Below, piece by piece: positions 1 to 41,500 of a DNA stretch of 64,000 nucleotides. Position numbers and translations under genes: made by a program. The stretch lies in NCBI GenBank assembly GCA_024704765.1, contig JAKMXF010000318.1, positions 1 to 64,000 on the forward strand, written 5' to 3'. Origin of the DNA: Oopsacas minuta (taxonomy: Eukaryota; Animalia; Porifera). The notes under the pieces were generated by a model, which was not told where the DNA came from, made no database searches, and worked only from the letters and a program-made list of their open reading frames with translations. Numbering within the stretch: the first letter of the stretch is position 1; every line of letters starts with the position of its first letter.

Positions 1-2745
1 GACAGTATTGTAACTACTAATACAGGGAATGAAGCCACTAGTGAATTGACAGTTTCAAACTCTAGGAATATTCAAGAAGATTACCAATGTAGATCTACAG
101 TAGGTGCTAGTCAACAAACAGATTCAGATACTTATACATTTAACTTAACTTCACCTCCAACTCTTATGATAAGTGTCAATCCTGTGGATCCACCAATTCT
201 ATACGTCACACAAACTATCAACATTACATGTCAGGTTACTACTCTAGCTAGATTTCAAAGCGGATTACGCATTGTTTGGTATTACAATGGGAGCATTCTT
301 AATTCAAATGGCAGCGTTTCCATTTCAACCATGAACTTGACTGATACTACCACAGAGAGTACATTAACATTTGGAGAGCTTGTTCTTTCTAATACAGGAG
401 CATATCACTGTGTAGCACAAGTGGTAAGTGTTTTGAATTCAGAAGAAGGAATGTCAAGTATAACCAATATTCAAGTTGTTCAAATTCCTGCTCCTCAATT
501 CATTCCTATTCAGTTGGTAACAACACCACCTATCTATGTTAATGATGTCTTCACTCTTCAATGTAACTTCAGTACTGTACCTAATATTAAACCACAGATC
601 GTCATCAATTGGTACAGAAATGGAACATTATTAACTAACAGTGGTGGAGACAGTATTGTAACTACTAATACAGGGAATGAAGCCACTAGTGAATTGACAG
701 TTTCAAACTCTATGAATATTCAAGAAGATTACCAATGTAGATCTACAGTAGGTGCTAGTCAACAAACAGATTCAGATACTTATACATTTAACTTTACTTC
801 ACCTCCAACTCCTATGATAAGCATCAATCCAGTGGATCCACCGGATCTTTATGTCACACAAACAATCAACATTACATGTCAGGTTACTACTCTAGCTAGA
901 TTTCAAAGCGGATTAAGCATTGCTTGGTATCAGAATGGAAGTATACTCAGTACAAATGGTAATGTCCAAATTTCAATAATTAACTTGGATGATACTACCA
1001 CAGAGAGTACATTAACATTTGGAGAGCTTGTCCTTGGTAATACAGGAGCATATCATTGTGTAGCACAAGTGGTAAGTGTTTTGAATTCAGAAGAAGGAAT
1101 GTCAAGTATAACCAATATTCAAGTTGTTCAAATTCCTGCTCCTCAATTCATTCCTATTCAGTTGGTAACAACACCACCTATCTATGTTAATGATGTCTTC
1201 ACTCTTCAATGTAACTTCAGTACTGTACCTAATATTAAACCACAGATCGTCATCAATTGGTACAGAGATGGAACATTATTAGCTAACAGTGGTGATGACA
1301 GTATTGTAACTACTAATACAGGGAATGAAGCCACTAGTGAATTGACAGTTTCAAATTCTATGAATATTCAAGAAGATTACCAATGTAGATCTACAGTAGG
1401 TGCTAGTCAACAAACAGTTTCAGATACTTATACATTTAACTTCACTCCAGATACTCCTGTACCAAGTGTTAATCCAGTGGATCCACCAATTCTATACGTC
1501 ACACAAATTATCAACATTACATGTCAGGTTACTACTCTAGCTGTATTTCATAGCGGATTACGCATTGCTTGGAATTACAATGGGAGCATTCTTAATCCAA
1601 ATGACAACGTTTCCATTTCAACCATGAACTTGACTGATACTACCACAGAGAGTACATTAACATTTGGAGAGCTTGTCCTTTCTAATACAGGAGCATATCA
1701 CTGTGTAGCACAAGTGGTAAGTGTTTTGAATTCAGAAGAAGGAATGTCAAGTATAACCAATATTCAAGTTGTTCAAATTCCTGCTCCTCAATTCATTTCT
1801 ATTCAGTTGGTAACATCGACTCCTATCTATGTCAATGATACATTTACCCTTCAATGTCTATTCAGTACTGTGCCTAATATTAAACCACAGATCGTCATCA
1901 ATTGGTACAGAGATGGAACATTATTAACTAACAGTGGTGGAGACAGTATTGTAACTACTAATACAGGGAATGAAGCCACTAGTGAATTGACAGTTTCAAA
2001 CTCTATGAATATTCAAGAAGATTACCAATGTAGATCTACAGTAGGTGCTAGTCAACAAACGGTTTCAGATACTTATACATTTCACTTCACTTCACCTCCA
2101 ACTCCTATGATAAGTGTCAATCCAGTGGATCCACCGGATCTATATGTCACACAAACTATAAATATTGCATGTCAGGTTACTACTCTAGCTAGATTTCAAA
2201 GCGGATTAAGCATTGTTTGGTATCAGGATGGAAGTATACTCAGTACAAATGGTAGTGTTCAAATTTCAATAGTTAACTTGGATGATACCACCACAGAGAG
2301 TACATTAACATTTTTAGACCTTGCCATGGCTAATACAGGAGCATATCGTTGTACAGCACAAGTTCCAGGTGTTTTGAATTCAGAAGCAGTGTCTATTACA
2401 ACAAATGTTCAAGTTAATCAAATTCCTGCTCCTCAATTCATTGCTATTCAGTTGGAAACATCGACCCCTATCTTTGTCAATGATACATTTACCCTTCAAT
2501 GTCTATTCAGTACTGTACCTAATATTAAACCACAGATCATCATTGATTGGTACAGAAATGGAACACTATTAACTAACAGTAGTTTTGATAGTATTGTAAC
2601 TACTAATGCAGGAAATGAAACTACTAGTGAATTGACAGTTTCAAACTCTATGAATATTCAAGGAGATTACCAATGTAGATCTACAGTAGGTGCTAGTCAA
2701 CAAACAGTTTCAGATAATTATACATTTAACTTCACTCCACCTCCA
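1..2745 (+). repeat. Intra-exonic tandem repeat, 645-648 bp unit encoding two Ig domains, more than 4 copies, continuing off the left edge
   Basis: The marker GA(C/T)AGTATTGTAACTACTAAT recurs at 1, 649, 1297, 1942 and 2587 (periods 648, 648, 645, 645). Confidence 0.95.
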
Positions 2746-5700
2746 ACTCTAATTCAAGTAGGCATCATTTACAGAGATTTCGAGTATGATTTATTCGAAG
2801 GCTATACCTTTCATTTGCATTGTGATTTTATGACCCTGGGAATTTTCCAGTCCATGTTGCAAATAGTTTGGTATCGTGATAACATACAGATACACAATTC
2901 ATCAGATGATGTAACAATCATGACTGTGAACGAAGGAATGGATACCAAACAGAGCAAGATTACAATAGCAGATGCCAAATTAAACGATTCTGGTGCATAT
3001 TCATGTGAAGGTAGCATCGAACCATATACTAGAACAAGATCAGAGATTTACAATGTTACAATAAATTCAACTGACGAGATACCAGCCATTGATGTATCGA
3101 CAACAGATCACAGTACAAATTCTATCACGTTTCAATTGTCTACAAATACTAATATAGACGAGACTTACCTCATATATTATAGGCCTGCTGGAACTAGTGA
3201 ACCCTACAAAGTTAGTCCCACCATCTTAACTTTATCCATCACAATAGAAGATCTTCTCCCTGGAACGGAATATGAGTATATAGTTGAGACAACCACTCAG
3301 TTTGGATCTACCAATTCTACTTTGTATATTGTGTCAACAGTTACTCAACTTCCACCCACTGGTTACAATATTGTCGGACCAATAGCAGGAGCTGTATTAG
3401 CATTGGTATTCTTAGGAATTCTTGTGTTGGTTGCAATTTTCTTGATAGCCTTCGTGTATAGGAAGAGGGATAATAATAAGTACGTATTTCGCAGTCAAGA
3501 GGAGTATGACCATGCTCTTAGGGCTAGTGATAGACACAGGAGAGGTGAACGCAACCTTATAACTAAAAGTACAGGTGTGGAGCTAAATGTCGGAAGCAGT
3601 GCTTTGTGTCAGAAAAATGTAGAAATATATGATGAGTCAGATGGCAAAAGAACGAGCACATTCAGGAAATCGATGGAGGTGCAGGAAACAGTTATGGTTA
3701 ATCAAGAACAAGGAGCTCGAGCTGAGCCGCTATATGAAGATTTCACATACGAAAGATACAATGTACCAATTGCAATGTTCTCGCAGAGAGTACTTGAGTA
3801 TCATCTTGCAAATAATGCAGAATTCGACAAACAATATTCAAGTTTCAAAAAAACTTTCATTCATGATGTTACAACAGGTTCAAACGTAGTGAATAAACCG
3901 AAAAATCGGTTTGCGAATATTATTCCTTATGAGCATTCGCGAGTGAAATTGTCCTTTACTGGTGAGAATTACTCTGACTACATAAACGCTTGTTACGTTG
4001 ATGGTTACTACAGTCCCCAATCTTATATTGCATCGCAAGGACCTATGCCTCATACAATTTATGACTTCTGGAGGATGATCTGGGAAAAGAATATCGAACA
4101 CATAGTAGCACTAACTCGTGTACTGGAAGCATTAAAGAAAAAATGCGAACAATATTGGCCTGAAAATGAACACGAGTCATGTTTATACGGTCCGATGGAG
4201 GTAACGTTGAAAAGGATTGAACGTTACACATCTTATGATATCAGAATTTTGGAAGTGAAGCATGAAGATTATGATAACGAAATTCGTGTTGTGATCCAGT
4301 TCCATTTCACCATGTGGCCTGATCATGGCGTGCCTATATTTTCAAGCTCTCTATTGACCTTCATAAACCATACGAAGGAATTTCACATACCTGGCAAATC
4401 GCAATCTCCGATTTTAGTTCACTGCAGTGCTGGGGTTGGGAGGACAGGTACTTTCATTGTACTGGACTATTTCTTAGAACATCTGAAGAAAAACGATAAA
4501 GTCAACGTTTACAAATTTGTAGCTCAACTTAGAGAAAGTAGGTGTCTTATGGTGCAAACCAAAGATCAATATATGTTCATACACGATGCTATACAAGATA
4601 TTATCACTTGTAAAGATACTTTTATTGAAGATCATGAATTTCCATTGTACGTGGAGAATGCCTTCATTCGCGACCTCAATACAATGGCCACACCATTTGA
4701 GGACAAATACGAACTAATTATGAAGACAAGTCGAATTATAGACCCTAGAGATGTCCAAGAATCTTCTAATCCAGCTAACGTAATGAAAAACAGATATCCT
4801 AATTTTGTACCGTTCGATTCGCATCGCGTTACAATAGTTCCTGATCAAGATTGTGATACGGATTACATAAATGCTAGTTTTGTGCATAGCTATCAAAAGC
4901 ATAAAGGATATATTGCAGCACAAAGTCCACTCGATTCCACTGTGTTTGACTTTTGGAAGATGATAACTAAGTATAGAATTCAGCTAATTGTGATGTTGTC
5001 AGAATTGGTTGAAGATGGACACGAAATGTGTGCGGAATATTGGCCAGAAGAAGGGAAAGAAATGCTTGTTAAGTACCTAGTGATTCGCTGCGAAAAGGAA
5101 GAAGTTTTCGATGATTTTGTTAGAAGAAAGCTTTCGATGTCTACGCAACAGGTTTGTACTTAGTTTATATTTTTGAAGTATTTTGTCTTACTTAACGATT
5201 TAGTAATTGCGGAACTTTATACTCCACGGTTAAAACTAATTCCGCAATCGAAAGCTAAAGTCAAAACCGACTTTATATTTTCTTGCTCATATTGTAATGA
5301 ATGTAGCATTTCAGACAATTTCAATCGGTTTTCTTATTACATTTCTTGCAAGGAAATATAGTTATAAAAACCGGTTTCGGCTCAACGGACTGTATACGAA
5401 TAATATTTCCTTCCGATAGGGCGGAATCAACCAAACTATTCATCAATTACAGTTTAAGAAATGGAAGCTTAACGAGCTACCAGAAATATCAGACCTACTC
5501 TCATTATATAATCAATTCACTCAAGTTGAGAGAGGTATCAAGTCGAAAGAATCACCCCCAATACTTGTACACTGCGACAACGGTGTTACACGTACCGGTA
5601 CGTTTATTGCCAGCATAAATAGTATACAACAACTCCAACTCGAAAGGAAAGTCGATATCTTTCAGATTGTCAGGAATTTGCGTAACTCAAGGCCTTGCAT

Positions 5701-5794
5701 GGTACCAAGTTTAGATTTGTATATTTTGCTCTTTAAACTTATTTCAAAGTATATTCAATCCTACGAAGAGAAGGCTTATGCGAATTTTGTATAA
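1..5794 (+). CDS. Receptor-type protein tyrosine phosphatase: at least 9 Ig domains, FN3, TM, PTP D1 and D2. 5'-truncated; join(<1..5151,5420..5794)
   Basis: The frame is open from base 1, so the track's TTG start at 46 is not the real start. Motifs: Ig C..W..YxC repeats; FN3 (LLPGTEYEYIV); TM (IAGAVLALVFLGILVLVAIFLIAFVY-RKR); D1 with WPDHGVP and HCSAGVGRTG. A phase-0 GT-AG intron at 5152..5419 restores D2 (TIHQLQFKKW...HCDNGVTRTG), ending AYANFV with the stop at 5792-5794. Confidence 0.93.
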
Positions 5795-6416
5795 GGGAAC
5801 ACGCTTTGAATCTTTGATAGGTTTTTCGGTTTTTTGTCTATATTTATTTGAATGATAATCCCCGATTAAGTTTGATTGTTTGTAAATATATGTACATTAC
5901 CTTTTTGTGTTATTTGAATTGTATAATCCATTGTTGAAGAAATATTTATAAAGATATGTATATTTATTTTCATGAACCAAGTTTTTTACAAGAATTATCT
6001 GTTAATAGATTTAGGTTGAAGGTAAGTGTATATTCACACATTTTTGGGACAATATATTTTCCTAGAATTGTTTCCAGTTGGTAGGCAGAGGTATTTGAAT
6101 GCGTAGAGGACAATTTCAACGAAGAAAGTTTCATTATTTTACCACAATCTCGGAAATTCTTAAAAAATAATTTACATGAAAATTGCTATATATCTGTGAG
6201 TGCAATTGGACGAAAAGTCTAATTATTCCACATCTCTCATTGTTATAATATCAACAATATATCTAATATTACAAATCACTCGTAAAAGAAGTACAAATGA
6301 ATAATAGTGTATATTATGTACTCATCAACATCAAAGTGATTACACATAAATACTCTATCAATCAATACAACTTGGCCAGCTCAAATTAAACAATCTAACA
6401 GATAGATAGTTATAGG

Positions 6417-9400
6417 TTAAACAGGGCAGCTTGACGTAGTTGTGTTGCTTCCAGAACTTGGGGAATATCTGGTTTGAAGCTCAACATATCTTGAAACAGG
6501 TTGTACACGTCGATCAAGTGAATTTATATTCAATTCGAGTGAATCTAAATGGCAATTTTTCTTCTGACAAGGGAAGGTATGATCTCGAAACATTTTAGAA
6601 AGTGTGTATGTTGATACAACAGTCATAATGATAATTATGACAACCAAAATCAGTGTAAACACACCTGTTATTGAGTATAGTATCAACATATTTGTGCTTA
6701 AATGTCCATCAGGATTAGAAATATGATTATTAACTTGTAATTGGAATTCTGAATAAGTCATTATTTGCTTGAGATGGAAGAGAGAAGGATGTTGTATTGA
6801 CAGTAATATTGCAATAGTTTCTTGTGGAGATTTGAATGTGTGGTATGGATTGTTGCTATCTGTTCCTGATGCGGTTATAACGAAATATGTCCTAGAAAAT
6901 AGTAAATATATAAAAATGGTTTGTATTTCGTACTGTAGAATTCGCTTTTTAGCAAGTTGTATTTGTACGAAATTCCCTTACTATGTACGCAATGTGCGAA
7001 TTTGCTATTAGAGGAACTGGAATTATTTCAATATAAAACATTATTAGCTAACCAGAAATAATACATGTAATTCAAAGTACTAAAAAACTTACAATCCATC
7101 AAGGTAGCGGTCATGTGTGTAGAATTGTAATGCTCTTTGGTCGTGTTTAACGGTAAGTTTGTATTCAAAATAGGAGCATATTGTTTGAGGATTTTGATTT
7201 AGAGAGTTGTTAATCATGAATACAACTGCGTAATCTTCTAGCCAGGATGGTAAGTTATTGATATCTTGTTTCTCTAGCGACCTGCAGGTGTCAATTTTCG
7301 CATCACAAGGCCCTAACGTACATTCTAATTCAGTTGATACACATTTGCATGACTGACATACTTCCGTTGTAGAAACAGTATCTACGTCATCATGGTATAT
7401 CGTGTGTATTACATTGCCTTCATGAGTCAATTTCCCATTTGTAAGTTCACAAGCATCTAATGTTACTTCTATAATAGCAAATAATTAGTATTAATTCATA
7501 GATAATACAATTATAAGTTTCAAATAATGCAATCGAAAATGACAATTTTATTTGATTTACACTCAACTCCGGTTATATTGAACCTCAAAGGATCGCGATA
7601 ATTACTTAGATATTAGCAAAATTCGACTGATGAGATTAATTTTTCTTTGAAGGTTTGGACAATATTTATGCAATTTTAGACTTCGAAATAAGTGTGTATT
7701 TCGATATATTCCTAGAGATTGACTATACTAAACTTACCATCACTGCACTTAGGACAACATTGTCCAGGTTGTATTGTAGATAATTTGCATCTGAGTTGTG
7801 GACAGCTCTCCTCTTCACACATAGTAATACCTTTCTGTAAGCATGTACAGCTCTGACATCCGTCATCCCAGATAGCTCCCACTGGTTGATGTGTATCATT
7901 ACTAGATATACAGTAATTCATTCCTAGTGTTTCTAATGGTGGATTTGTTGTATCTGAATTTGGGGTCTAAAACATATGTATATAATATGGAAATTATGTT
8001 TTTAGGAATTATTGGCATTTTTACAATTTATGCAAAACTGAGTTAGAAAGACTTACATTTACAATATCATTGGTATCGTTTGCAGTGCAAGAAGGACAGC
8101 ATTTACCTTCCATGACAACCTGATTGGCGGCTGGGCATGGGAGGGATGGACAGTTATTCCGTATGCATACAGTACGTCCTCGTGCACAAATACAGTTATG
8201 ACAAGAATCTGGATACCAAGTCTCATCTTTGAAATGTAATATCCCTCTGTGAATGCAGGTTTCGTTGTGGACTATAAAAAATGTATAAATGCTTTCACAA
8301 AAATTTGTATATAAATTCAATGTTTACCTGGTACACAAATATCCTCATTACAACAGGAGCCTGGTTTTCCATCTCCCAGACTCTCCCTTACCCTGGTGAA
8401 ACCGTCAGGACAATTAATGACGTCACAATGTAAACAAACGCAATCTTGAGTCTGCTCATCCCAAACTGAATCTTCCGGGCAGAGTGCATTAGTTAAATTA
8501 TCTAAGAAAATGACATTTATAAAGTCAACAATATTGAACTTTGACAGATGTTAGATTGACAGATAATTACACTGCACTGATTCAGGCCTTATCAGTTCAA
8601 GTCAATTTGTTTCTTATTTTTAAAGGAATTTGTGATTCATGTTTCCAAAGTTTCTAGTCATCTTGGTTGCAAAAATTAATCATCTTTGAATACAAAAGAT
8701 AAATAAAAGTAGCATTAGCTCGTTAATTAGGTTTCAGCAGTACGGGAAGTCCTTAAATAATGACGAATACCATCATAAGTACATTTAATTATACATGATA
8801 TTGTGCTAGTTCTCTTGGTAATCATTATAAGACAGGATGGCATTGAAAACCATGTATATTATATTGTGAAGCCAATCCAACATTCAAGATACAATAATAG
8901 AAGAATGTGTCACGTATTTTCTTGCATGAGTTAACTGGTTGAAACTCAAAAAGTTAAATAAAATTAATATTTACTCCGAAGAGCAACAAATTTTTTTGAT
9001 AAAAAACTATTTGTTAAAGAATCATCCCAAATATACTCAAGTTTTTTGAAAATATTGCAAATATAGGCAAGTTTCGAATTCTATATTTGGAAATTTTTCG
9101 TCCGAGAAAGGGAATGAATTATATCATTAGGTAACTAAGAAGAGTACAGCTGGGTAAGTTATGTTGAGTCAAGTGTCTATGTTAAATTATAATTAGATTT
9201 GTTTGGGATTCCTCTCGTATATTCAAGCTGACAATAAATTTCCATCATAAAGATAAACAATAATAGTTACATAATGTTGCAATATGGCAACTAAAAGTAA
9301 ATACATGAATTTGCAACCGTGTTTTACAGCCAAAAAGTACTATTTCCATTTTTACGTTTGATAATATTTAAAGATAGCTATGACCATGCGAATTACAAGA

Positions 9401-12400
9401 AGTAAGAAATTAGGCGCCAAACGAGAGCTCGAAAGTGATACTGATGGAAGCCAAGAAGAATTATCACAGAATAAGAAAGTGAAAGTTTCTCCAGAATCAC
9501 CAATGCAAATTACTACAATCAATCCAATAAAAATGTGTTTGTTTTCGACTCAATTACGAACCAAAATTACCCCAAAATTCGCAGAAAATAACACTATCGC
9601 TTCAATACTAAGCTTACCTCACCCGAAAACAGGCCACGCGACTACTTTTGCATTAACAACCGATACAAATGAGCTCTGCGAAATAAAAATTTTCTCGAAA
9701 ACATACAAAACAATACTAACTCCAAATAGAATAATTAGCAGACCTAATATCTACTTCATAACACCATTTGATCCGATTTTTATCCTCCTCGCCCTGTTAG
9801 AAACACAAAATTCAGATCATTACTGTTTGATAGAGCAATTGCTCTTCAATACAGAGTTTGAAGATCTTCGAAAAATTATTCCAACTTTCAGTCAATATGT
9901 CATTGAACTTATTTGTGATACGAAAATACATGACGGCCAAATTGCATGCAAGTATAGCAAAGAAAAAACTATGTCAACGTTAGAATCAAAAGTGCAAAGA
10001 GTCGCAGAAAGATTACAAAATCTTGATTCTTTTCAGTCATGTTACAAATCAATTGTTTCAACAAAAGATGGTGCATTAAAGTATGCGATCAGTTTGGTAA
10101 ATGAATACCTAACTAATAAACTATCGGGAGATCTCGCTATACATTTAGGTCTGACAGATTACAGTCATTTAATAGCAGAATGTGAACAAGAAGTTAGAAA
10201 AATGCAAGTCGCTTCTGTTACAGAAGTTGAAACGAAAAAAGGCACAAAGAAACAACCTCCAAAGAAGCAGTCCAGAGCAAAGAAGATGTTAGAGAATACG
10301 GATAAATCTGGAATGAAAAGTTTATCAACTTTCTTTACGAAACCCAAAGATTAGTAGCTATTTGATTGAGTTAATAATTTACCTTAGAATTGGCATATCT
10401 AATCACTTTATTATTAATAAATAATTAATGTAGAGCAGATATATTATTTCATCAAAATGTGTGGTAATATATTTAGAGGTTAATTTATAAATAATTAAGG
10501 CGATTAGGTGGATTGGATAAGATTTATCAAATCGTAGAAACGTAGTATATATTTTATGTATGTAATTACAAAGACTTTTTAATCAAGCACGAGTAATTTT
10601 AAAGTGAAAATATGACCATTTATGCGTTAGATATCAAAATTATTCGGCTGTTCGCACTCACAACTTGACCACATAAGTACACACTAGCATTTAATTATGG
10701 CATCTTCGGGTATATGAAATTGCAATACAAATATTATTCCTCAATACTACACAATACGTATATAGGTGGACTACTAGGCATATGTCATATTTTCAAATTT
10801 CAACATGTACAGTGAAACAAGCTTATAACTAACACGCAGTAGCGAATTCACGGATATAATGAAGTATTCCTACAGACTCGCGGTTATTGCTAATAAATTT
10901 CACCCTTCTGAATAAGTTCCACTACACAAGTGTGATTATTACGAATGAGTTCGCTATAAGCGTGTTCACTCTAAATGCATAGAGATTAATAGTTGGGAAA
11001 ATAATTGGTTCATTTTAGTACAAAACATCAACAAGTATTTTAGAAATTCTAGAGTGACTAAAATACAAATAATAAAAATATAGCTATGGTAATACTCACC
11101 TCTGTATGGCATACAAATGTATGTGTCACAACATTCACCAGATAATGCTGCTGGCATTATCATAACTGCTAACTCATTATCTCTACATGTAGGGATCTCA
11201 CAGGTTGATCTTCTGCACACACATTTTCCAGAAGTTGGACAACAATTTCTGATATTTCCAGGTTTGTAAATTTCTCCTTCTTTACAATCAATTGGATGAT
11301 CTTCGATACAAATTGCATTGTTGCACTCCAAATGGTCCCGATCAATATCTAGAATGAGTAATCGTAATAATATCGCTGATTATCTAATTTGTCAGTTCAG
11401 TTTTACTATGGCATATAATTACATAATAATGTAATTGCATAGAGAAGCTAGTCCAGCTAATTAGTACAAGCTTTTAAACAGGATTCAAATATTATTACAT
11501 ATCTTGGTTACCAAACGGACACTTTGGAATTTAACAACCATTGGATAAATAGAGTATTGATTTTCTCATAATTTCATAGTTGTAGAAAAATGCGTCAACT
11601 CTTAATTATTATTTATTACCTTGGCAAGTGCCTTGTTCTGAATATGGATCATCTCGCATGCAAACTAATGAGTATAAACATCTCCCAAGTCCAGGACCAC
11701 ACGCTTCTCCTACGAATTTGGGACAAACCTAGCGGATTAGAAGGTAAATAACAACAAATAAAATAAGTGTGAAATATGCCATAAATATTCTGAAACCATC
11801 AAATAAACCTAGTTTAAAATCCATCGATATGATAAGTGTGGAAATTAATTACAAATATTTCCGAACACCTTGGAGAAATTTAAACAAATTATAATGGCAA
11901 AAATTAGTTAGGAAGTAAAGTGTCATATCAGAGAGGCCACACTCGTTAAAACCAGATAAAATCAACTTAGTGTAGAATCAACACGCCGTTAGGAAACCTT
12001 AACACTACAAAATGACTTCTTACTTAGATTCTAATTCAAAGGTTTTGTTGCTAGCGTAGCCTGCTTCTCCGATAATTCTATACTAATTGAGGACTACTTA
12101 TATCTGATTTACTAAATGAGCAATGCATTAGAACAATTATAATGCTATTATCATTATTGACTGTTAGGGAATTCAATATATAGGAGGTTCATTTAAATGG
12201 AAATTTTCTATTGTTCTTCAATCAGACTTGAGTACTCTGTGTAGACATTTGTCTGAGGGTAGTTAGATTATTACTACTTAGCTTTAATAATCCCTAATTA
12301 CACATATTTGTATGGTAGTGCAGTAGTAGGATTAATTCGTCTTTATTTTATGCTCGAAAAAACTGAGTAATTTACTTGTAAAATACACTTTTTTTGAAAT

Positions 12401-33323: not shown

Positions 33324-35255
33324 TTAGTGAATTTGTTGGTTCGTAATTAATTTCTCAATCTTCAGTGAACATCTTTCCACTATATCATTATATTGTTTAT
33401 CTTTTGCTAACAAGATGGTATCCTTAAATTCTTCCAAAGCTGGTACATCATTCTCTTTACAGCAACTAGAGAGAAACTTTTCAAAAATATCCAAATTTAA
33501 TCTACGTTTCTCTTTGAATGATTTCTTTAACAAAGAAATAGCTTGTATGTGTTCTCTACACATACATATACATTCTATAACTCCTTCTAAGATAGAACTA
33601 TGAATTTCTAAAGGCTGATTCGACTCTTGAATTTCTGGCCATAATTCCGTGAAAATAAACCGACAATCTTTTCCTAATCCTTGTTTAATAGCAGAATTGA
33701 TCAAAAGGTTGTAAGTATCCATATTAACAGAATTATTGTCATTACGCATTCTGTAATATAAAAGTTTCATTTCTGCAAACGCATTTACTCTTGAAAACGA
33801 AAGCAAAATTAAATTATTTATTTTTAATGGTGGTTGCTTTCCTTCATAAGATTGTAGGATATAGTAATCAAAATATGAAATAGCTTTCAAGTATTGTAGT
33901 CTATGCCCTTCTAAACATATTTGAACTGGTGAGATTCGTTCCAAGAGATCGCTAACTTGTTCAAAAGTTAGAGGAGTTTTTAGTTTATGAGAGAAATAAA
34001 CCATAATGTATAGCATGTTACAGTAAGTATTGACTGGAAATCTATCATTTTGAGTGTAATAATTAGTCCAGCTAGTTAATTGCTCGTATATTTCAGAACT
34101 TTTTCTGATAGCAGCCAAGGCGACATATTTCGAGAAAAGATTCCTATCGAATGGGTCGAGTGTGTTTGCAATTTGGTAGTGGATATTTGCTATGAATAAT
34201 TCTGGTGTTGGGAAGAAAAATAACGAATTTACTTGTTTAAAAAGCTCATGGTTTAGAAAATCTTCAATGTTTTCAGAATCCTGAGATTCAAGTGCTTGGT
34301 TATTTTCTGTGGATTTTTTGCGTATTCTTAAGAGTGATTGTAAATGGAGAAGATTAACAAAATATCTTCTCTGATGTCTGTAATGGCCAGATAATGGGTA
34401 TTTATGCGTTATGCTGAATGCATGCATTGCTAAATTAATGTTATTCTTCCGTAGACACACATAATATAGATCTGCAAGGACCATAGGATTTGACAGAATT
34501 GTTCGATGAACGCCTTCTTGAGTTTGATTTTTTTGTGAGCGAATTTTATTGGAGAAATCTATTTGATCAAGTGACTGCAGAATTTTCTTTTGAAAGCCCA
34601 ATTCTTCGTCGTTGCAATCATAAGCTGAGATTAATTGTTGAAGTAAGAACAACCTATATGGTTTGATACACTGTGGAGTTTGTACGAAATTAAAAGCAGC
34701 ATTATCATGTAACAAAGTATTTTTGAAGTCATTTGCGAAAGAATTGAAGGATCCGAGTTTTGTTAGAAGTTGAAGGACAGGTAAAATATTTGTTTGTCCA
34801 TAGAAACTTAGATAGAGGTGTTTAAACTCTAGATTCCCATTAATGTAATCTGAAATACTATCAAACAATGAATGATAACGCTCACCAAGTAATATCTGTA
34901 GAGCTTTTGGAAAAATGCAATCATATTTTTCCATAACAAAATTCAAAATATTCTCTAATTTTTTCGTGTTAAGCACATGCAAACGTGTAACAGAAAAAAC
35001 TAGCTTTGACTCTATCATTTCTGATAAAACAGAATTATATTCTTCTTTACTTTGACATAAATCGATTAATAAGTCATAATATAGAGGAGGTAATGGTTTG
35101 GTGTTTGTCTGTTTATATTCAATTATCGGTTTAAGTATTTGTTCTAGAGGTTCATTGTTCATTTTAGCTTCAATCCCTGACCAAATTGTAGAATTGTTTG
35201 TGAGACTTCTTGTCAACGGAAACATTCGAGGAAGTATATATCTTAAACGAATCAT
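33324..35255 (-). CDS. Probable mitochondrial PPR-like helical-repeat protein, 643 aa
   Basis: Arg-rich N-terminus without acidic residues (MIRLRYILPRMFPLTRSL). C-terminal PPR-like units: DTYNLLINSAIKQGLGKDCRFIF, ILEGVIECICMCREHIQAISLL, IFEKFLSSCCKENDVPALEEF. Confidence 0.6.
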   Translation of the reverse strand: MIRLRYILPRMFPLTRSLTNNSTIWSGIEAKMNNEPLEQILKPIIEYKQTNTKPLPPLYYDLLIDLCQSKEEYNSVLSEMIESKLVFSVTRLHVLNTKKLENILNFVMEKYDCIFPKALQILLGERYHSLFDSISDYINGNLEFKHLYLSFYGQTNILPVLQLLTKLGSFNSFANDFKNTLLHDNAAFNFVQTPQCIKPYRLFLLQQLISAYDCNDEELGFQKKILQSLDQIDFSNKIRSQKNQTQEGVHRTILSNPMVLADLYYVCLRKNNINLAMHAFSITHKYPLSGHYRHQRRYFVNLLHLQSLLRIRKKSTENNQALESQDSENIEDFLNHELFKQVNSLFFFPTPELFIANIHYQIANTLDPFDRNLFSKYVALAAIRKSSEIYEQLTSWTNYYTQNDRFPVNTYCNMLYIMVYFSHKLKTPLTFEQVSDLLERISPVQICLEGHRLQYLKAISYFDYYILQSYEGKQPPLKINNLILLSFSRVNAFAEMKLLYYRMRNDNNSVNMDTYNLLINSAIKQGLGKDCRFIFTELWPEIQESNQPLEIHSSILEGVIECICMCREHIQAISLLKKSFKEKRRLNLDIFEKFLSSCCKENDVPALEEFKDTILLAKDKQYNDIVERCSLKIEKLITNQQIH

Positions 35256-35577: not shown

Positions 35578-36027
35578 TTAAACAATCGCATGTTTACGAG
35601 TCATTTCTTTTGCATTCTTATTATACAGCTGTATATCTTGCTTGTATAGCCTAGCTATCTCTGGGACAAGTGGATCTTCAGGATTAGGATCAGATAGTAG
35701 TGAAGAAATAGTCATAAGCATTTTAGAAATTGTAAGAGCAGGTGACCAATCGTGGCCAAGAATGTCTAGAGACATCTGCCCTAAACTAGTAATGTTTGGG
35801 TGATAAATTCGTGTAATAAATTGCACTTTAGGGGGACGAAATGGGTACGAGTTACAGAATTTCATGTCCAAATAGAACACTCCTCCTTCATAAGGAGTGT
35901 CTTTAGGACCCTTTATAGTACCCACCCAATTGAACAGATCTTCATCTCCTCTAGGTTCTGCCGTAATCATCTCCTTTGGATTAGCCCATATATCTTTAAA
36001 CTCTTTCTTCAAACGTTTCGAAGACAT
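35578..36027 (-). CDS. UBE2D-like E2 variant, copy 1 (catalytic Cys replaced by Ser)
   Basis: UBC fold: KRLKKE, GPKDTPYEGGVF, YPFRPPKV, YHPNITSLGQM-S-LDIL, WSPAL. Ser codon TCT at 35770-35772. Start ATG 36027 chosen by homology to copy 2. Confidence 0.9.
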   Translation of the reverse strand: MSSKRLKKEFKDIWANPKEMITAEPRGDEDLFNWVGTIKGPKDTPYEGGVFYLDMKFCNSYPFRPPKVQFITRIYHPNITSLGQMSLDILGHDWSPALTISKMLMTISSLLSDPNPEDPLVPEIARLYKQDIQLYNKNAKEMTRKHAIV

Positions 36028-37108
36028 GCTATATTTACAAAACATATGTAAACTAATGCTCTAAAGATCTACGAAGCGAAATCGAAGCACTCAATTACCT
36101 CAATTATTAAAACATATTTGAAATATAGACATATCAAACAGCAGGTATTTTTGTCAATAGGCTGCAGATTGGAATAAAACATAAAGATTGTGAAGTTACC
36201 TAGCAAGAGAAGTACGTTAGTTAAATATATAAACTACGTATTAACTGGGGCAAAACCAATTGAAAAACCATTGTAGGACCTGATATTATGCAAATATTTG
36301 TTTGTATTATCAGTAAATTCGTATTAACCGTGTTCGTACTAATACTAACGAGGTTCTGCTGTGTAAACAATAATACATGCGCATAATAAGTAAGAATGAA
36401 GTTGTTAAGTGTATTTAATTAGAAATCTTCAATAAAACGCAGATCCAGCTATTTTATAATATTCAGATTTTGCGACAAAATATGATACAGTCCTGTTTGT
36501 TTATAAAAGTGAATTAAATATTGAAAATTCTCCGATGTTTGTATTTGAAAATATTTACATAGCATGTTTCTGAGTCATTTCTTTCGCGTTCTTATTATAC
36601 AGCTGTATATCTTCTTTGTAGAGGTGAGCTATCTCTGGGACAAGCGGATCATCAGGATTAGGATTAGGTAATAGAGACCAAATATGGATGAGAACTTTTA
36701 TAATTGTATAAGCAGGTGACCAATCACTTTCTAGAAATTGTATAGACAGCTGTCCTGAACTATTAATGTGAGGATGATAAATTGGTGTAATAAATCGCAC
36801 TTTAGGGGGACGAAATGGGTAGAAGAGACAGAATTTTATGTCCAAATAGAACACTCCTCCTTCATAAGGAGTGTCTTTAGGACCCTTTATAGTACCCACC
36901 CAATTGTACAGATCTTCATCTCCTCTAGGTTCTGCTGTTACAGGCTCAACTGGGTTTTCCTTTATCTCTTTAAGCTCTTTCTTCAAACGGCTCAAAGACA
37001 TACTCTATATTACAAAACATTTGTAAATTAATGTTCTAGAGATATACGAAGCGGAATCGAAGCACTCAATTACCCCCAATAATTAAAACAAATTTGAAAT
37101 ATAGACAT
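36028..37108. repeat. Duplicated upstream block of about 105 bp: 36028-36133 versus 37002-37108
   Basis: Both blocks read ...ACAAAACAT.TGTAAA.TAATG.TCTA.AGAT.TACGAAGCG.AATCGAAGCACTCAATTACC...TTAAAACA.ATTTGAAATATAGACAT. Confidence 0.8.
36555..37001 (-). CDS. UBE2D-like E2 variant, copy 2 (Cys replaced by Ser; HPN changed to HPH)
   Basis: YHPHINSSGQL-S-IQFLESDWSPAY; TCT at 36744-36746. Confidence 0.9.
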   Translation of the reverse strand: MSLSRLKKELKEIKENPVEPVTAEPRGDEDLYNWVGTIKGPKDTPYEGGVFYLDIKFCLFYPFRPPKVRFITPIYHPHINSSGQLSIQFLESDWSPAYTIIKVLIHIWSLLPNPNPDDPLVPEIAHLYKEDIQLYNKNAKEMTQKHAM

Positions 37109-37514
37109 ACTAGCCGACAGACGGTCAAAATTTGTTATATCAGGAGTTCGTGTTAACAAGAGTAATACCTAATGAATAACAACTGTAGAGACCTGATTTT
37201 GTGTTAATTTTTGTCCGTCTAATCTGTGGAAATTCGTATTAACCGTGTTCGTAATACAAAGTTCTACTGTCTGTATATTCCATATCAATCTAAATATGTA
37301 CGTAACAGATAATTCACTAAAATGTTTAGTATAATCAAGGTGTACGACAGAAAAGCACTGGGAAACTTCAGTAACTATAAAAGACATCTTTGAAAAGCAA
37401 ATTATACAATTACAATTTACAAATAGTATAAAACAGCAACCTTATTGCTGTGGTAAAATAAGTATCAAAATTCACATAACATGTTTGTAAAATTCCGCAT
37501 TCAATACACCATAT

Positions 37515-37997
37515 TCAAACTGCATGTTTAAGAGTCATTTCCCTCGCAGTTTCGTCATACAATTGTCTATCTTCTCTATAAAGTCTACCCATATCAGCTA
37601 AAATGGGATCATCAGGATTAGGATTAGCGAGTAGAGATGAAATAGCTGTAAGAAGAACAGGGATAGTAACTGTAGATCCCCAACCAGATGGTAAAATATT
37701 ATTAACAGATACTTCTCCTTCTTTGGCAATGTTTGGATGATAGATTGGGGTAATAAATTCTATTTTTGGAGGAAGCACGGGATATGAAGCAGGAAAGTTC
37801 AAATTCACATAAAACATTCCCCCTTCGTAAGGAGAGTCCTTTGGACCTTTTATGGTGGCAACCCATGTGTACATTTCATTGTTTTCATCTCCTCTTGGTT
37901 CTGCAGTCTCCATTTCCATTGGGTTAGCCATCATATATGTTAACTCCTTTTTTAATCTGTTTAATGATACTTTTGATGTATCGAGACTACACCCCAT
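37515..37997 (-). CDS. UBE2D-like E2 variant, copy 3 (Cys replaced by Ser; most divergent)
   Basis: YHPNIAKEGEV-S-VNNILPSGW; TCT at 37707-37709; N-terminal MGC extension. Confidence 0.88.
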   Translation of the reverse strand: MGCSLDTSKVSLNRLKKELTYMMANPMEMETAEPRGDENNEMYTWVATIKGPKDSPYEGGMFYVNLNFPASYPVLPPKIEFITPIYHPNIAKEGEVSVNNILPSGWGSTVTIPVLLTAISSLLANPNPDDPILADMGRLYREDRQLYDETAREMTLKHAV

Positions 37998-38528
37998 CTG
38001 TATAATATACTACTAATATATGTAATATGATTTCAGTATTTACTACGAGCAGCTAGTGACGATAGGAATTAAATTTATCATATTTAGCCTATACAAGAGG
38101 AAATCCGTTTTGGCTCTAAATGCATATGAGTATTGTTGAAAACATTTTGCTCTAATTTTACAGAGACCATATGAAAGAAATTGCAACTGTTCTCTGGTAG
38201 TAGCATAAAATCCGAGTTTATTTAACTTCATGAAACTACTTAACATACACAAAAATCCATTTCATTATCCATGGTATATAATAAATGAGAAGTGCAGTAT
38301 TTGATCAGTCCATAGATTGAATACAACATGACCAAATATAGCTATACGTATTCTATAGAATCTATAGTATAGATAAATAATATAATTCTCATTAAAATAA
38401 GAATCAAATATTGAAAATATAATAAATAAGAGATGAAAAGTAATTTTTCTGTAGACTAGGGTCTATAATAGTAGAATAGTGAGTACTATAAAGGTTAAGT
38501 GAAATTTCGAGATTATTAAATAGTCCAC

Positions 38529-41500
38529 TTAAGAAGTATGGTAATGTAAACACATCCATTTTCCATCAAAGTTCTTCCATACCCTAGTTTCTGGGATATT
38601 TACACTTACATATTTCCCATCAACATCAACATACATAATCTGTTTGGTATAAGAAATACAAGCACCATTCATTCCTATCATATGTACAATTGGATTATTA
38701 ACAGACACACGTTGACCTTTGAACATAGGTAATTCGGCTGGTATTATATTAGTACAATCTGGAGCAGATAATTGACTGTAGAGTTCTGTGTTGTTATAAA
38801 TCTTTGCTTCTGTGATGCTCTGTGTAACAGCTATGACGTCAACAATGAAATCTGCCTCATAATGCCGGAGATCTTCGTCTGGGACATTTGTAGGCATTTT
38901 CTTGGATAATTTTTTAATATTCGTAGATAATTCAAACACAGTAGTTTCAGGATTCTCAGTAATACTGCTTGGTATCTTGAGTAGACAATTTCCATCGTCT
39001 TTAGTGCCTTCTGTTATCAATCTTTTGAATTTGTTTGTCATCATCACAGTACGACCTAGAGTTTTCCATTTACGTCTAGCCTTATTGAACTCTTTCAACC
39101 CATCAATCGTTCTGGATCGGTGCAATCTTGCTGGTACAGTATCGCGTTTAAATACCCAGGGGTGTTTAAGAACTTGTCTAGCAGTAATACGCTGTACTGG
39201 ATCAAAAACAAGCATTTTAGAGATTAAATCTTTTGCTTGTGGAGTGACGTCATTCCATTCTTCGTACCCAAAGAAATCGAACTTCCCTTTGGAGAGGATA
39301 TTCTTAACAGCCCTAGTGTCTGTTTGTGGATAAGGCATATAACCTACCAATAAAATGTATAGGAGAATCCCACATGCCCAGATATCTCCATTTTTGGTGT
39401 AGTACCTATTTTCAAACACTTCAGGAGAAATGTAGCAAGGAGTTCCGGCCATCTCATGATGAATTAGTTTATCAGATTCCAATTCGATTGCTAATCCAAA
39501 GTCTGTGAGTTTTACATCTTTAGGTTCTTCAAAGCTTGTTAAGAGCAAATTCTCCGGCTTGATATCCCTAAGAGATGCAAATCAATCTGCGGAGACATCG
39601 CTGTATCGATTGTTTAATTATTCTAATTTAGTATTTTAGCATTCAAAAGTATCAAGTTAGATTGTACTATAATCAAAGGCGTATCATTTTAATGAAGACA
39701 GGTACAAAATTAAGTAGATATGAAACTGGCATGGCTCCCTACGTATAAAGTGTAGAGAGATGTCACAGAGAGAGGGAATTACCTTGCTGAAAGGATGTCC
39801 ACAAACTACTGGTTATTGTACATAACTTTTACAAAGAAAATTACAAGACTTATATTCTACAATATTGACTGATTAATTAGAAATCAAAACGTGATATTGG
39901 AGGAGGGATTCGTTTATGATATATAATTCATTTGTCAATAATCCAGGAATCTGAGGAGTTCATTTGCAATACTGGGATTCTGAGATTTGGAATTGAATTC
40001 GGGAAAATATTCGTTAGTTATCTATAGAAGTTCAATATACCTAGAATATATATTTCAGATATGCTAAACTCCATCATACTTCTTCTATGAATAATTCTGA
40101 ATACTTTTAGGAATATCCAAATGGAAGATGGAATATTAATATTAATTAAATCTAGGGAAATAGTTGCATGAATTTCCCCAGAGATGATGATGATGAAATA
40201 TACGTATAAATTCAGAATTATTTTTTAATATTTTAAAGAAACTTACAATTTCTATTTTTGTTTTATGGGAAAACTAATAGTAATTTTATGTACAAAAGAA
40301 AGGTAATACATAAAAATAAACAAAAATAAGTGAATGGGAAAAATGTTTGTTTTACAGAAGTGTAACTAGGGTAAATCATGAAGAATGTAAGTGAACACAT
40401 TTCCAAACATCACCATTATTCTCCCAAAGGCAAGTTTCAAGTGTTTGATGCGTCATATGTGTATTTTCTTCATTAACATATTGAATTAACTTTGAATAGG
40501 AAATGCAAGCACCGGTTGAACCTATTTTCTTAACTCTCGGATTAATAATAGTTACTTGAACTGTATCACCGAAATTAATATTCAAATCAAGCTCAAATTT
40601 CGTAAAATTCCCAGTACAAATTGAACCACAAGTTTTTGAATCATTCATGGCCATAACTTTACAAAAGTTAGCTGTTAGCGAGATAATTTCATTCAAAAAG
40701 TCTTCATCAAGACTGCCAACTTTTGTTAGCATCGGCAAGCTAACATTCCCAGAGACTTTCCTTTGGCTATCTTGTGGTTTTCCAATTGTATTATCTGATT
40801 TGTGTTTGTCATTAAGAAGCATACCGAATCGTTGTGAAACCATTGTACTAATAATAGCACCCTTTAGCTTACGTCGAGCGTTAAACTTTTTCAAACCTTG
40901 AATGGTGTTCTGATGGTGCAATTTCGAAGCAAACTCTTCTCTATAATTAATCCATGGATGGTTTAAAGCTTCTCTAGCAGAAATACGCTTGCTTTGATCA
41001 GTTTTGAGCAGTTGATTAATCAGAGATTTGGCTTCGTCAGTTATTGAATCCCATTCTGGTGAATAAAATTCATATTTTCCTTCAGAGATTATTTTTGAGA
41101 GAACTTTCTCATTATCATCCCAAAAAGGTGGATAACCAACTAACAAGATGTATAAGATTACCCCGCATGCCCATACATCAACAGGTTTTCCATAAATTTC
41201 CTTATTCACTATTTCAGGAGCAAAGTAGCCTAATGTACCAGCAATTTTGTGGTAACCAAGAACGTCTTCTGGAATCCATAATGCTAATGCGAAATTCCCA
41301 AGTTTGATATCCGAGTTTGCTTCTTGGGTTTTGAGTAGTAGATTCTCAGGTTTGATATCCCTATTGGAAGATTGATCAAAAACAAAACTCAATATTTTTG
41401 GAATTTTCTTACAGTGAGAAACTATTAAGCTACTAATTCATTAAATTGAAATTTGATAAGATATTTTTCCAAAAAATTCTATCTATTTCTAACTCAGTTA

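Follow-up and report, generated by a model that had tools for sequence, protein, structure and literature searches.

UBE2D-like proteins without the catalytic cysteine form a probable pseudo-E2 family in glass sponges

The UBC fold of the ubiquitin-conjugating enzymes (E2s) also occurs in proteins that have no catalytic cysteine, among them the UEVs (UBE2V1/UBE2V2-Mms2, the UEV domain of TSG101, and AKTIP), which function through binding and not through thioester chemistry, and form ancient, separate subfamilies. Replacement of this cysteine is also familiar from the laboratory, where engineered UbcH5 C85S, which gives an oxyester, and C85K, which gives an isopeptide, are loaded in vitro and used as tools for trapping stable conjugates. 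Among plant proteins, Arabidopsis COP10 is UBE2D-like with serine in place of the active-site cysteine, and is described in PMC11864197 as catalytically dead, not chargeable, and a scaffold in the COP10-DET1-DDB1 complex. In the human CRL4-DET1-COP1 complex, UBE2E2 has a Cys-independent recruitment role, and its C139S form still supports the complex (PMC11864197). Here we describe three genes, E2a, E2b and E2c, of the glass sponge Oopsacas minuta, which lie in a stretch of 64,000 nucleotides (contig JAKMXF010000318.1 of assembly GCA_024704765.1, positions 1 to 64,000; hereafter the window) and which encode UBE2D-like proteins with serine at the catalytic position. We suggest that they are probable members of a glass-sponge-restricted family derived from UBE2D (UBC4/5) and devoid of the catalytic cysteine, for which non-catalytic binding, as scaffold, recruiter or competitor, would be the most likely mechanism. 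Literature searches turned up no description of a natural serine-E2 family in animals.

Three UBE2D-like genes with serine at the catalytic position

E2a, E2b and E2c are intact, intronless UBE2D-like open reading frames (ORFs) arranged head-to-tail in tandem on the minus strand (Table 1). All three match the Pfam family UQ_con (PF00179; E = 3e-47, 1e-44 and 2e-38, respectively) over profile positions 1-139 of 140, and this is the only family among their Pfam matches, with no match to the UEV model. Among proteins of solved structure, E2a is closest to UBE2D2 and UBE2D3 (E ~1e-56 over residues 6-153, with ~54% identity to UBE2D3), and in the alignment the serine of each copy falls exactly on Cys85 of UBE2D, within the motifs HPNITSLGQM-S-LDIL (E2a), HPHINSSGQL-S-IQFL (E2b) and HPNIAKEGEV-S-VNNIL (E2c). 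The initial annotation of this DNA had proposed three tandem UBE2D-like E2s with serine for the catalytic cysteine, and its motifs, TCT codons and intact frames were all confirmed. No alternative cysteine lies near the active-site position in the Oopsacas sequences, the others being C57 in E2a and E2b, C3 in E2c, and C3 in the in-frame extension of a 155-aa form of E2a. Among 187 cluster representatives of UBE2D-like proteins, 174 motif matches have cysteine and six sequences fall outside the motif pattern, while the non-Cys matches are glass-sponge proteins, one metagenomic protein and three plant entries; judged by this survey, serine at the catalytic position of the sponge proteins is not due to chance.

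Four public sequencing runs from one sample (X1-X4), their kind unlisted, cover the region. Runs X1-X3 are DNA-like, with a flat word depth of ~100 across the region, and X4 is RNA-like, with a word depth of ~1,000-10,000 over each of the three genes versus 0-210 over the spacers. Adaptor ends are of the TruSeq type in X4 and Nextera in X2 and X3. Because this depth profile and the adaptor ends fit the RNA-seq library described in the Oopsacas genome paper, we infer that X4 is RNA. At the three serine codons, no letter other than TCT was seen in contigs of the three DNA-like runs and the RNA-like run, an agreement that leaves room for a minor allele, as run contigs drop rare variants. The depth in X4 and the agreement of the runs at the serine codons indicate that E2a, E2b and E2c are real, intact and transcribed, so that both the codon and the expression of the genes bear out the initial annotation, the latter insofar as X4 is RNA. 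Their transcription depth is apparently above that of the neighbours, word depths in run contigs being a poor measure of expression level. It is scarcely credible that the serines are a sequencing or assembly artefact hiding a true TGT, given the same codon in three diverged copies, the uniform reading in four runs, and the codons TCC, ACT and AAG in independent assemblies of other species (see below).

Two further observations came from the same runs. At positions 35980 and 35988, in codons 16 and 14 of the 149-aa form of E2a, runs X2, X3 and X4 read G and T, where both letters are A in the assembly and in X1, the latter showing no other letter at either place. The codon for Asn is unaltered in meaning by the first change, whereas the second turns Trp into Arg in helix 1 (DIWANP to DIRANP). 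These differences are either polymorphism or a difference between the assembly and the short reads. One X4 contig departs from the genome at position 38054, which lies 57 nt upstream of the start of E2c and directly follows a possible AG acceptor. The next 11 letters of this contig (mRNA strand, AAAAAACTTAC) have no match and may come from a 5' exon or from a spliced leader; trans-splicing has been reported in the glass sponge Aphrocallistes vastus (PMC10282587).

As for the starts, E2a probably begins at its second ATG (36027, giving 149 aa, as in GenBank gene model P0001) rather than at the first ATG of the ORF, and in E2b the ATG that matches the upstream ATG of E2a is out of frame. E2c, by its sequence the oldest and most divergent of the three Oopsacas copies, has a nine-residue N-terminal extension starting MGC, which is obligatory because the canonical Met is now Val. 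We considered N-myristoylation, as E2c, the syntenic copy of a second glass sponge (assembly ERZ25072730) and one copy of a third (ERZ25766962) start with MG and a short extension, and do not propose it, as in all three Asp or Pro replaces the required small uncharged residue. A retrogene origin was likewise set aside, the absence of introns being uninformative when many genes of the compact Oopsacas genome have none (1.59 introns per gene according to the genome paper).

Orthologues, descent and selection

A search of 5.8 billion proteins with E2a returned only its own paralogues as close relatives, followed by UBE2D-like proteins at ~60% identity. One of the latter, P0006, has serine at the catalytic position and lies on a 595-kb contig of ENA assembly ERZ25072730 (L002, 10001-10471), where the gene order is that of the window: CaMKII-like genes, E2, a 652-aa protein, aminotransferase, ferritin and phosphoribosyltransferase, with the flanking neighbours 43% and 57% identical to their window counterparts. 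The protein of the second haplotype of this assembly (P0308; L009, 10001-10471) also has serine, as does a dispersed recent copy (P0123). The duplication that gave rise to P0123 (L005, 10001-11317) also took in the flanking DNA (~95% identity) and, from the 650-aa neighbour gene, the first 174 codons; P0123 now lies in a region with MULE transposase and reverse-transcriptase fragments, and has lost Gly2. A profile search found two tandem E2s at the same syntenic site in ERZ25766962, with threonine (P0125) and lysine (P0128) at the catalytic position. In ERZ20067936 the interval between CaMKII and the 650-aa gene holds no E2, and a Cys-bearing pair, P0045 and P0070, is found instead next to a transposase fragment in the interval from RabGAP-TBC to SelO (L003, 3391-3846 and 6001-6450); RabGAP-TBC and SelO are directly adjacent, with no E2 between them, in Oopsacas and ERZ25072730. 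The codons at the Cys85 position are accordingly TCT in the three Oopsacas genes, TCC twice in ERZ25072730, ACT and AAG in ERZ25766962, and TGC in the Cys-bearing pair. A SelO search pointed to at least seven hexactinellid-like assemblies, and E2-variant orthologues turned up in three of these by profile search. The expectation that serine-bearing orthologues would be found in related genomes therefore held for ERZ25072730, in both haplotypes, and failed for ERZ25766962 with its threonine and lysine.

UBE2D position 117, an Asp next to the active site in UBE2D, is Cys (TGT) in P0006, P0308 and both Cys-bearing proteins of ERZ20067936, and Asp (GAT) in the others; codon 117 of P0123 differs from that of its parent by an adjacent two-base change (TG/GA), and one ERZ25072730 haplotype has an additional Cys at position 90. 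Outside the sponges, a 1590-bp scaffold of ENA metagenome ERZ23486799 (L004), from an unrelated, GC-rich microbial eukaryote, carries three tandem UBE2D-like genes (2-217, 523-969 and 1169-1590), of which the first has cysteine, the second (P0049) serine, and the third apparently serine at the catalytic position. The replacement of Cys by Ser in UBE2D paralogues is therefore a recurrent natural event.

A maximum-likelihood tree of the glass-sponge E2 proteins and ~50 UBE2D-like sequences unites the seven Cys-less proteins in a single clade (support 97/88), within which the Oopsacas trio (93/47) and the pairs of the other two species (100/91 and 100/93) group separately, indicating lineage-specific duplications. 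The sister of this clade (99/95) is the Cys-bearing pair of ERZ20067936, and the sponge clade with its sister stands apart from 49 UBE2D-like sequences at 99/95, with no grouping with canonical UBE2D. All nine proteins, the seven Cys-less and the two Cys-bearing, share one inserted residue after G27-D28 and several motifs. We take ERZ20067936 to be a hexactinellid because its SelO is 67% identical to that of Oopsacas versus ~54% to those of other animals; in a SelO tree it is the longest of seven glass-sponge branches, early and not firmly placed.

Since TCT is found in all three Oopsacas copies and TCC in the syntenic ERZ25072730 orthologue, the serine is older than the Oopsacas triplication, as the initial annotation had supposed. 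The last ancestor shared by Oopsacas, ERZ25072730 and ERZ25766962 had one divergent UBE2D-like gene in the interval from the CaMKII-like genes to the 650-aa gene, already with Ser (TCY) for Cys. Independent duplications followed in each lineage, giving three tandem genes in Oopsacas, two tandem genes in ERZ25766962 and one dispersed copy in ERZ25072730. In the simplest history, such a divergent gene was present in early hexactinellids, a copy of it became fixed in that interval and lost Cys to Ser through one base change, and Ser later changed to Thr to Lys in the ERZ25766962 lineage.

The sponge proteins share with COP10 a UBE2D-like UBC fold, serine for the catalytic cysteine and, in E2c, an N-terminal extension, and COP10 is among the fold matches of E2c (41% identity, TM 0.87). 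However, the sponge genes are tandemly expanded and also have threonine or lysine, and the extension is 9 aa in E2c versus ~36 aa in COP10. Because the sponge family is nested beside a Cys-bearing sponge pair and E2c is no closer to COP10 (41%) than to UBE2D2 (45%), the family is independent of COP10 by descent. With the UEVs the sponge proteins have in common the UBC fold without the catalytic cysteine; they differ in matching UQ_con only, in having UBE2D as nearest relative and in still keeping HPN, and are not UBE2V/Mms2 or TSG101 by descent. Canonical UBE2D is the best match in both sequence and structure, and its HPN, F62, S-P-A and DPNPDDP loops are largely kept in E2a, whereas the sponge proteins lack Cys85, have the residue inserted after G27-D28 and a replaced S22, and fall outside the canonical cluster of the tree. 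Oopsacas presumably has a canonical Cys-bearing UBE2D as well. UBE2E2 is comparable as a UBE2D/E-type E2 with a Cys-independent role, but it is a normal, active E2 and the sponge proteins are permanently Cys-less.

Older comparisons within the family give omega values of 0.14-0.30 (p<1e-6 against neutrality), indicating purifying selection. The E2s of ERZ25072730 and ERZ25766962, at an unsaturated dS of 0.5-0.8, have omega 0.25-0.30 with p ~1e-7 for the deficit of non-synonymous changes, and E2c compared with E2a or E2b has omega 0.14-0.24 (p<1e-7). Set beside the values for the 650-aa neighbour (0.22-0.29), ferritin (0.07-0.10) and phosphoribosyltransferase (~0.05), these omegas indicate that the family is fast-evolving for an E2, canonical UBE2D being near-invariant, yet clearly constrained. 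Between E2a and E2b, codons 21-75 have a pS of 0.07 versus 0.24-0.40 elsewhere, which suggests a gene-conversion tract, and amino-acid change is concentrated in helix 1 and around the active site. By the usual definition of the E2 superfamily, the Oopsacas proteins have the UBC core fold and lack the catalytic thioester cysteine, which is serine in all three copies. What marks an E2 variant, namely a UBC fold without the catalytic cysteine in a gene that has been retained, was found here, retention being evident from purifying selection, synteny in three species and transcription.

Retained surfaces and possible modes of action

When the proteins were mapped onto UBE2D numbering, R5 and H75 proved invariant in the seven Cys-less proteins, as did P76, which is Thr in one Cys-bearing sister. 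N77 is kept in six of the seven (HPN in E2a and E2c, HPH in E2b) and D117 also in six, whereas five retain K8, N114, D87 (Gln in E2b, Asn in E2c) and F62 (Val in E2c, His in P0128). The S-P-A loop (S94-P95-A96) is kept in four, including E2a and E2b, and has become G-S-T in E2c, which also has one residue inserted after the serine. Most residues of L4 and L7 are kept. Each species has at least one copy with canonical ligase-binding residues and another with changed ones, the alterations F62V/H and A96T/P/V being found in the second or third copy. S22, part of the backside ubiquitin site, is Thr in all three Oopsacas copies and Arg or Lys in the other species. In UBE2D, L104 contacts the donor ubiquitin in the closed, reactive E2~Ub state; the Cys-less proteins have M/I/T/Y/S/T/T at this position and Leu in none. 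An AlphaFold2 model of E2c (pLDDT 90.4; RMSD 1.5 A and TM 0.88/0.95 to UBE2D2) shows a confidently predicted UBC fold.

Because the residue at the catalytic position varies, several of the catalytic helpers are dispensable and L104 is lost, while the fold and the loops that face E1 and E3 are kept under selection, these proteins are best understood as pseudo-E2s that work by binding. They would act without a thioester, through retained E2 surfaces with which they may bind a partner, scaffold, recruit or compete, in the manner of plant COP10 and of UBE2E2 in the DET1 complex. Candidate surfaces are helix 1 (R5/K8), the loops of HPN and DPNPDDP and, in one or more copies of each species, those of F62 and S-P-A; candidate partners would be a RING, U-box or HECT ligase, E1, or another ligase subunit. 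The altered F62 and A96 in second or third copies suggest that partners diversified after duplication. The initial annotation had treated the serine itself as the mark of the family, a view that did not survive, as the syntenic ERZ25766962 orthologues have threonine and lysine, each of the residues N77, D87, N114 and D117 is missing from one or more copies, and L104 is not kept.

Some of the findings weigh against binding as the mode of action, or against a function for every copy. Serine, threonine and lysine are all possible ubiquitin acceptors, and no alanine, glycine or bulky hydrophobic residue is seen at this position. HPN and D117, each kept in six of seven, amount to more than a simple loss of chemistry would need, though these residues are also structural. 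No binding partner can be deduced from the sequences, and the identification of X4 as RNA rests on inference from its depth profile and the methods of the genome paper. Moreover, the young pairs are indistinguishable from neutral: E2a and E2b have omega 0.5-0.6 (p=0.06), the ERZ25766962 tandem pair 0.6-0.7 (p=0.07) and the ERZ25072730 pair ~1.5-2 (p=0.83), and individual copies, E2b especially, may therefore be decaying. The claim that the genes are maintained was thus upheld for the older pairs, with omega well below 1, and not for the young ones.

The last of these points would be expected if the genes were non-functional UBE2D relics whose frames happen to stay open. E2b, with its degraded active site and longer branch in the tree, and P0123, which lies next to a truncated copy of the neighbour gene amid abundant transposon sequence and differs from its parent by 17 non-synonymous versus 3 synonymous changes, look most like such relics, and decay of these individual copies is possible. 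For the family as a whole we regard it as quite improbable: each of the 8 sequences, which come from three species, has an intact frame at dS up to ~2, every older comparison shows significant purifying selection, the position is conserved, depth is high in the RNA-like run, and E2a and E2b share a conserved 5' flank.

The nature of the residues at the catalytic position raises the alternative that these are true acceptor E2s, in which E1 would load the serine (threonine or lysine in the relatives) to give a long-lived oxyester- or isopeptide-linked E2-ubiquitin, acting as a slow enzyme, a stable E2~Ub mimic or a ubiquitin sink. All residues found there (serine five times, threonine and lysine) are able to accept ubiquitin; engineered UBE2D C85S and C85K, which have serine and lysine at the very same position of the same scaffold, are loaded by E1 in established laboratory practice; and helix 1 keeps R5 in every protein and K8 in most, as the active-site loop does HPN. 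Yet the residue is not conserved, and Ser to Thr to Lys is a simple mutational path. As only two or three substitution events are involved, along the simple path TCT to ACT to AAG, the pattern of the three residues has no statistical meaning. Threonine and lysine are poor acceptors at physiological pH, and L104, required for the closed E2~Ub state, is replaced. At position 22 the proteins have T, R or K; S22R, which is found in the related sponges and is also a standard laboratory mutation, is the classic means of keeping ubiquitin from binding the backside. Further substitutions are N77H and D87Q in E2b and D87N in E2c. Finally, the natural Ser-for-Cys E2 COP10 is reported in PMC11864197 as not chargeable. 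We therefore consider acceptor function doubtful, though somewhat less so than wholesale decay, and favour pseudo-E2s that work by binding.

Several proposals on the standing and role of the genes need correction. They had been thought to represent an undescribed kind of protein, but COP10, according to PMC11864197, is already known as a dead UBE2D-like E2 with serine for cysteine. The statement that the known Cys-less E2s are all separate families holds for UBE2V/Mms2, TSG101 and AKTIP and is incomplete, COP10 being UBE2D-like. No supporting feature was found for an immune or defence role, nor for a role involving OTUB1. The sponge genes are most likely a new, lineage-specific family within the known class of Cys-less E2 variants, and not a new kind of serine enzyme.

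Flanking features and wider meaning

Within the tandem unit of ~974 bp, ~100 nt of 5' flank are shared by E2a and E2b at 86-92% identity (Table 1). A 27-nt element (AAATTCGTATTAACCGTGTTCGTA...) at 36315-36341 and 37230-37256 is 96% identical between the two E2 spacers, above the level of the surrounding spacer. Orthologues of the 643-aa downstream neighbour lie at L002 10798-12756, L006 11458-13407 and L010 10001-11953; only seven proteins among 1.84 billion representatives match it with E <= 0.001, five of these at <= 1e-10, and it appears to be specific to glass sponges, with its position kept and the moderate omega given above for the 650-aa neighbour. A functional tie to the CaMKII neighbours was considered and rejected, since the whole block, aminotransferase, ferritin and phosphoribosyltransferase included, is syntenic and the adjacency of E2 and CaMKII is therefore inherited and uninformative.

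Table 1. Positions within the window of the three E2 genes, their 5' flanks and the adjoining genes
Feature	Position	Strand	Size	Remarks
643-aa protein, downstream neighbour	33324..35255	-	643 aa	without Pfam family; synteny anchor in four glass-sponge assemblies
E2a	35578..36027	-	149 aa as annotated	mechanical ORF to 36045; Ser codon TCT 35770-35772; HPN, F62, S-P-A and D117 kept
5' flank of E2a	36035..36133	-		matches 5' flank of E2b at 86-92%; shared promoter/5'UTR part of tandem unit
E2b	36555..37001	-	148 aa	75% identity to E2a; Ser codon TCT 36744-36746; HPH for HPN, SIQFL for CLDIL
5' flank of E2b	37010..37109	-		counterpart of 36035-36133
E2c	37515..37997	-	160 aa	55-57% identity to E2a/E2b; Ser codon TCT 37707-37709
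CaMKII-like large exon, upstream neighbour	38529..39548	-		kinase C-lobe and CaMKII association domain; synteny anchor

Mms2/UEV1, TSG101 and COP10 have important regulatory roles in ubiquitin signalling, and each of these known families is of ancient origin. In contrast, the sponge family is young, confined to one lineage, repeatedly duplicated, apparently abundantly transcribed and still very UBE2D-like. If the acceptor model were true, its members would be nature's own C85S and C85K traps, with stable E2-ubiquitin conjugates as signalling or regulatory species. As a family of probable pseudo-E2s, it offers a parallel to plant COP10 in an early-branching animal, with a natural series of serine, threonine and lysine at the catalytic position, and, the point of cysteine loss being bracketed by the Cys-bearing sister pair, a natural experiment in the change from enzyme to pseudo-enzyme.

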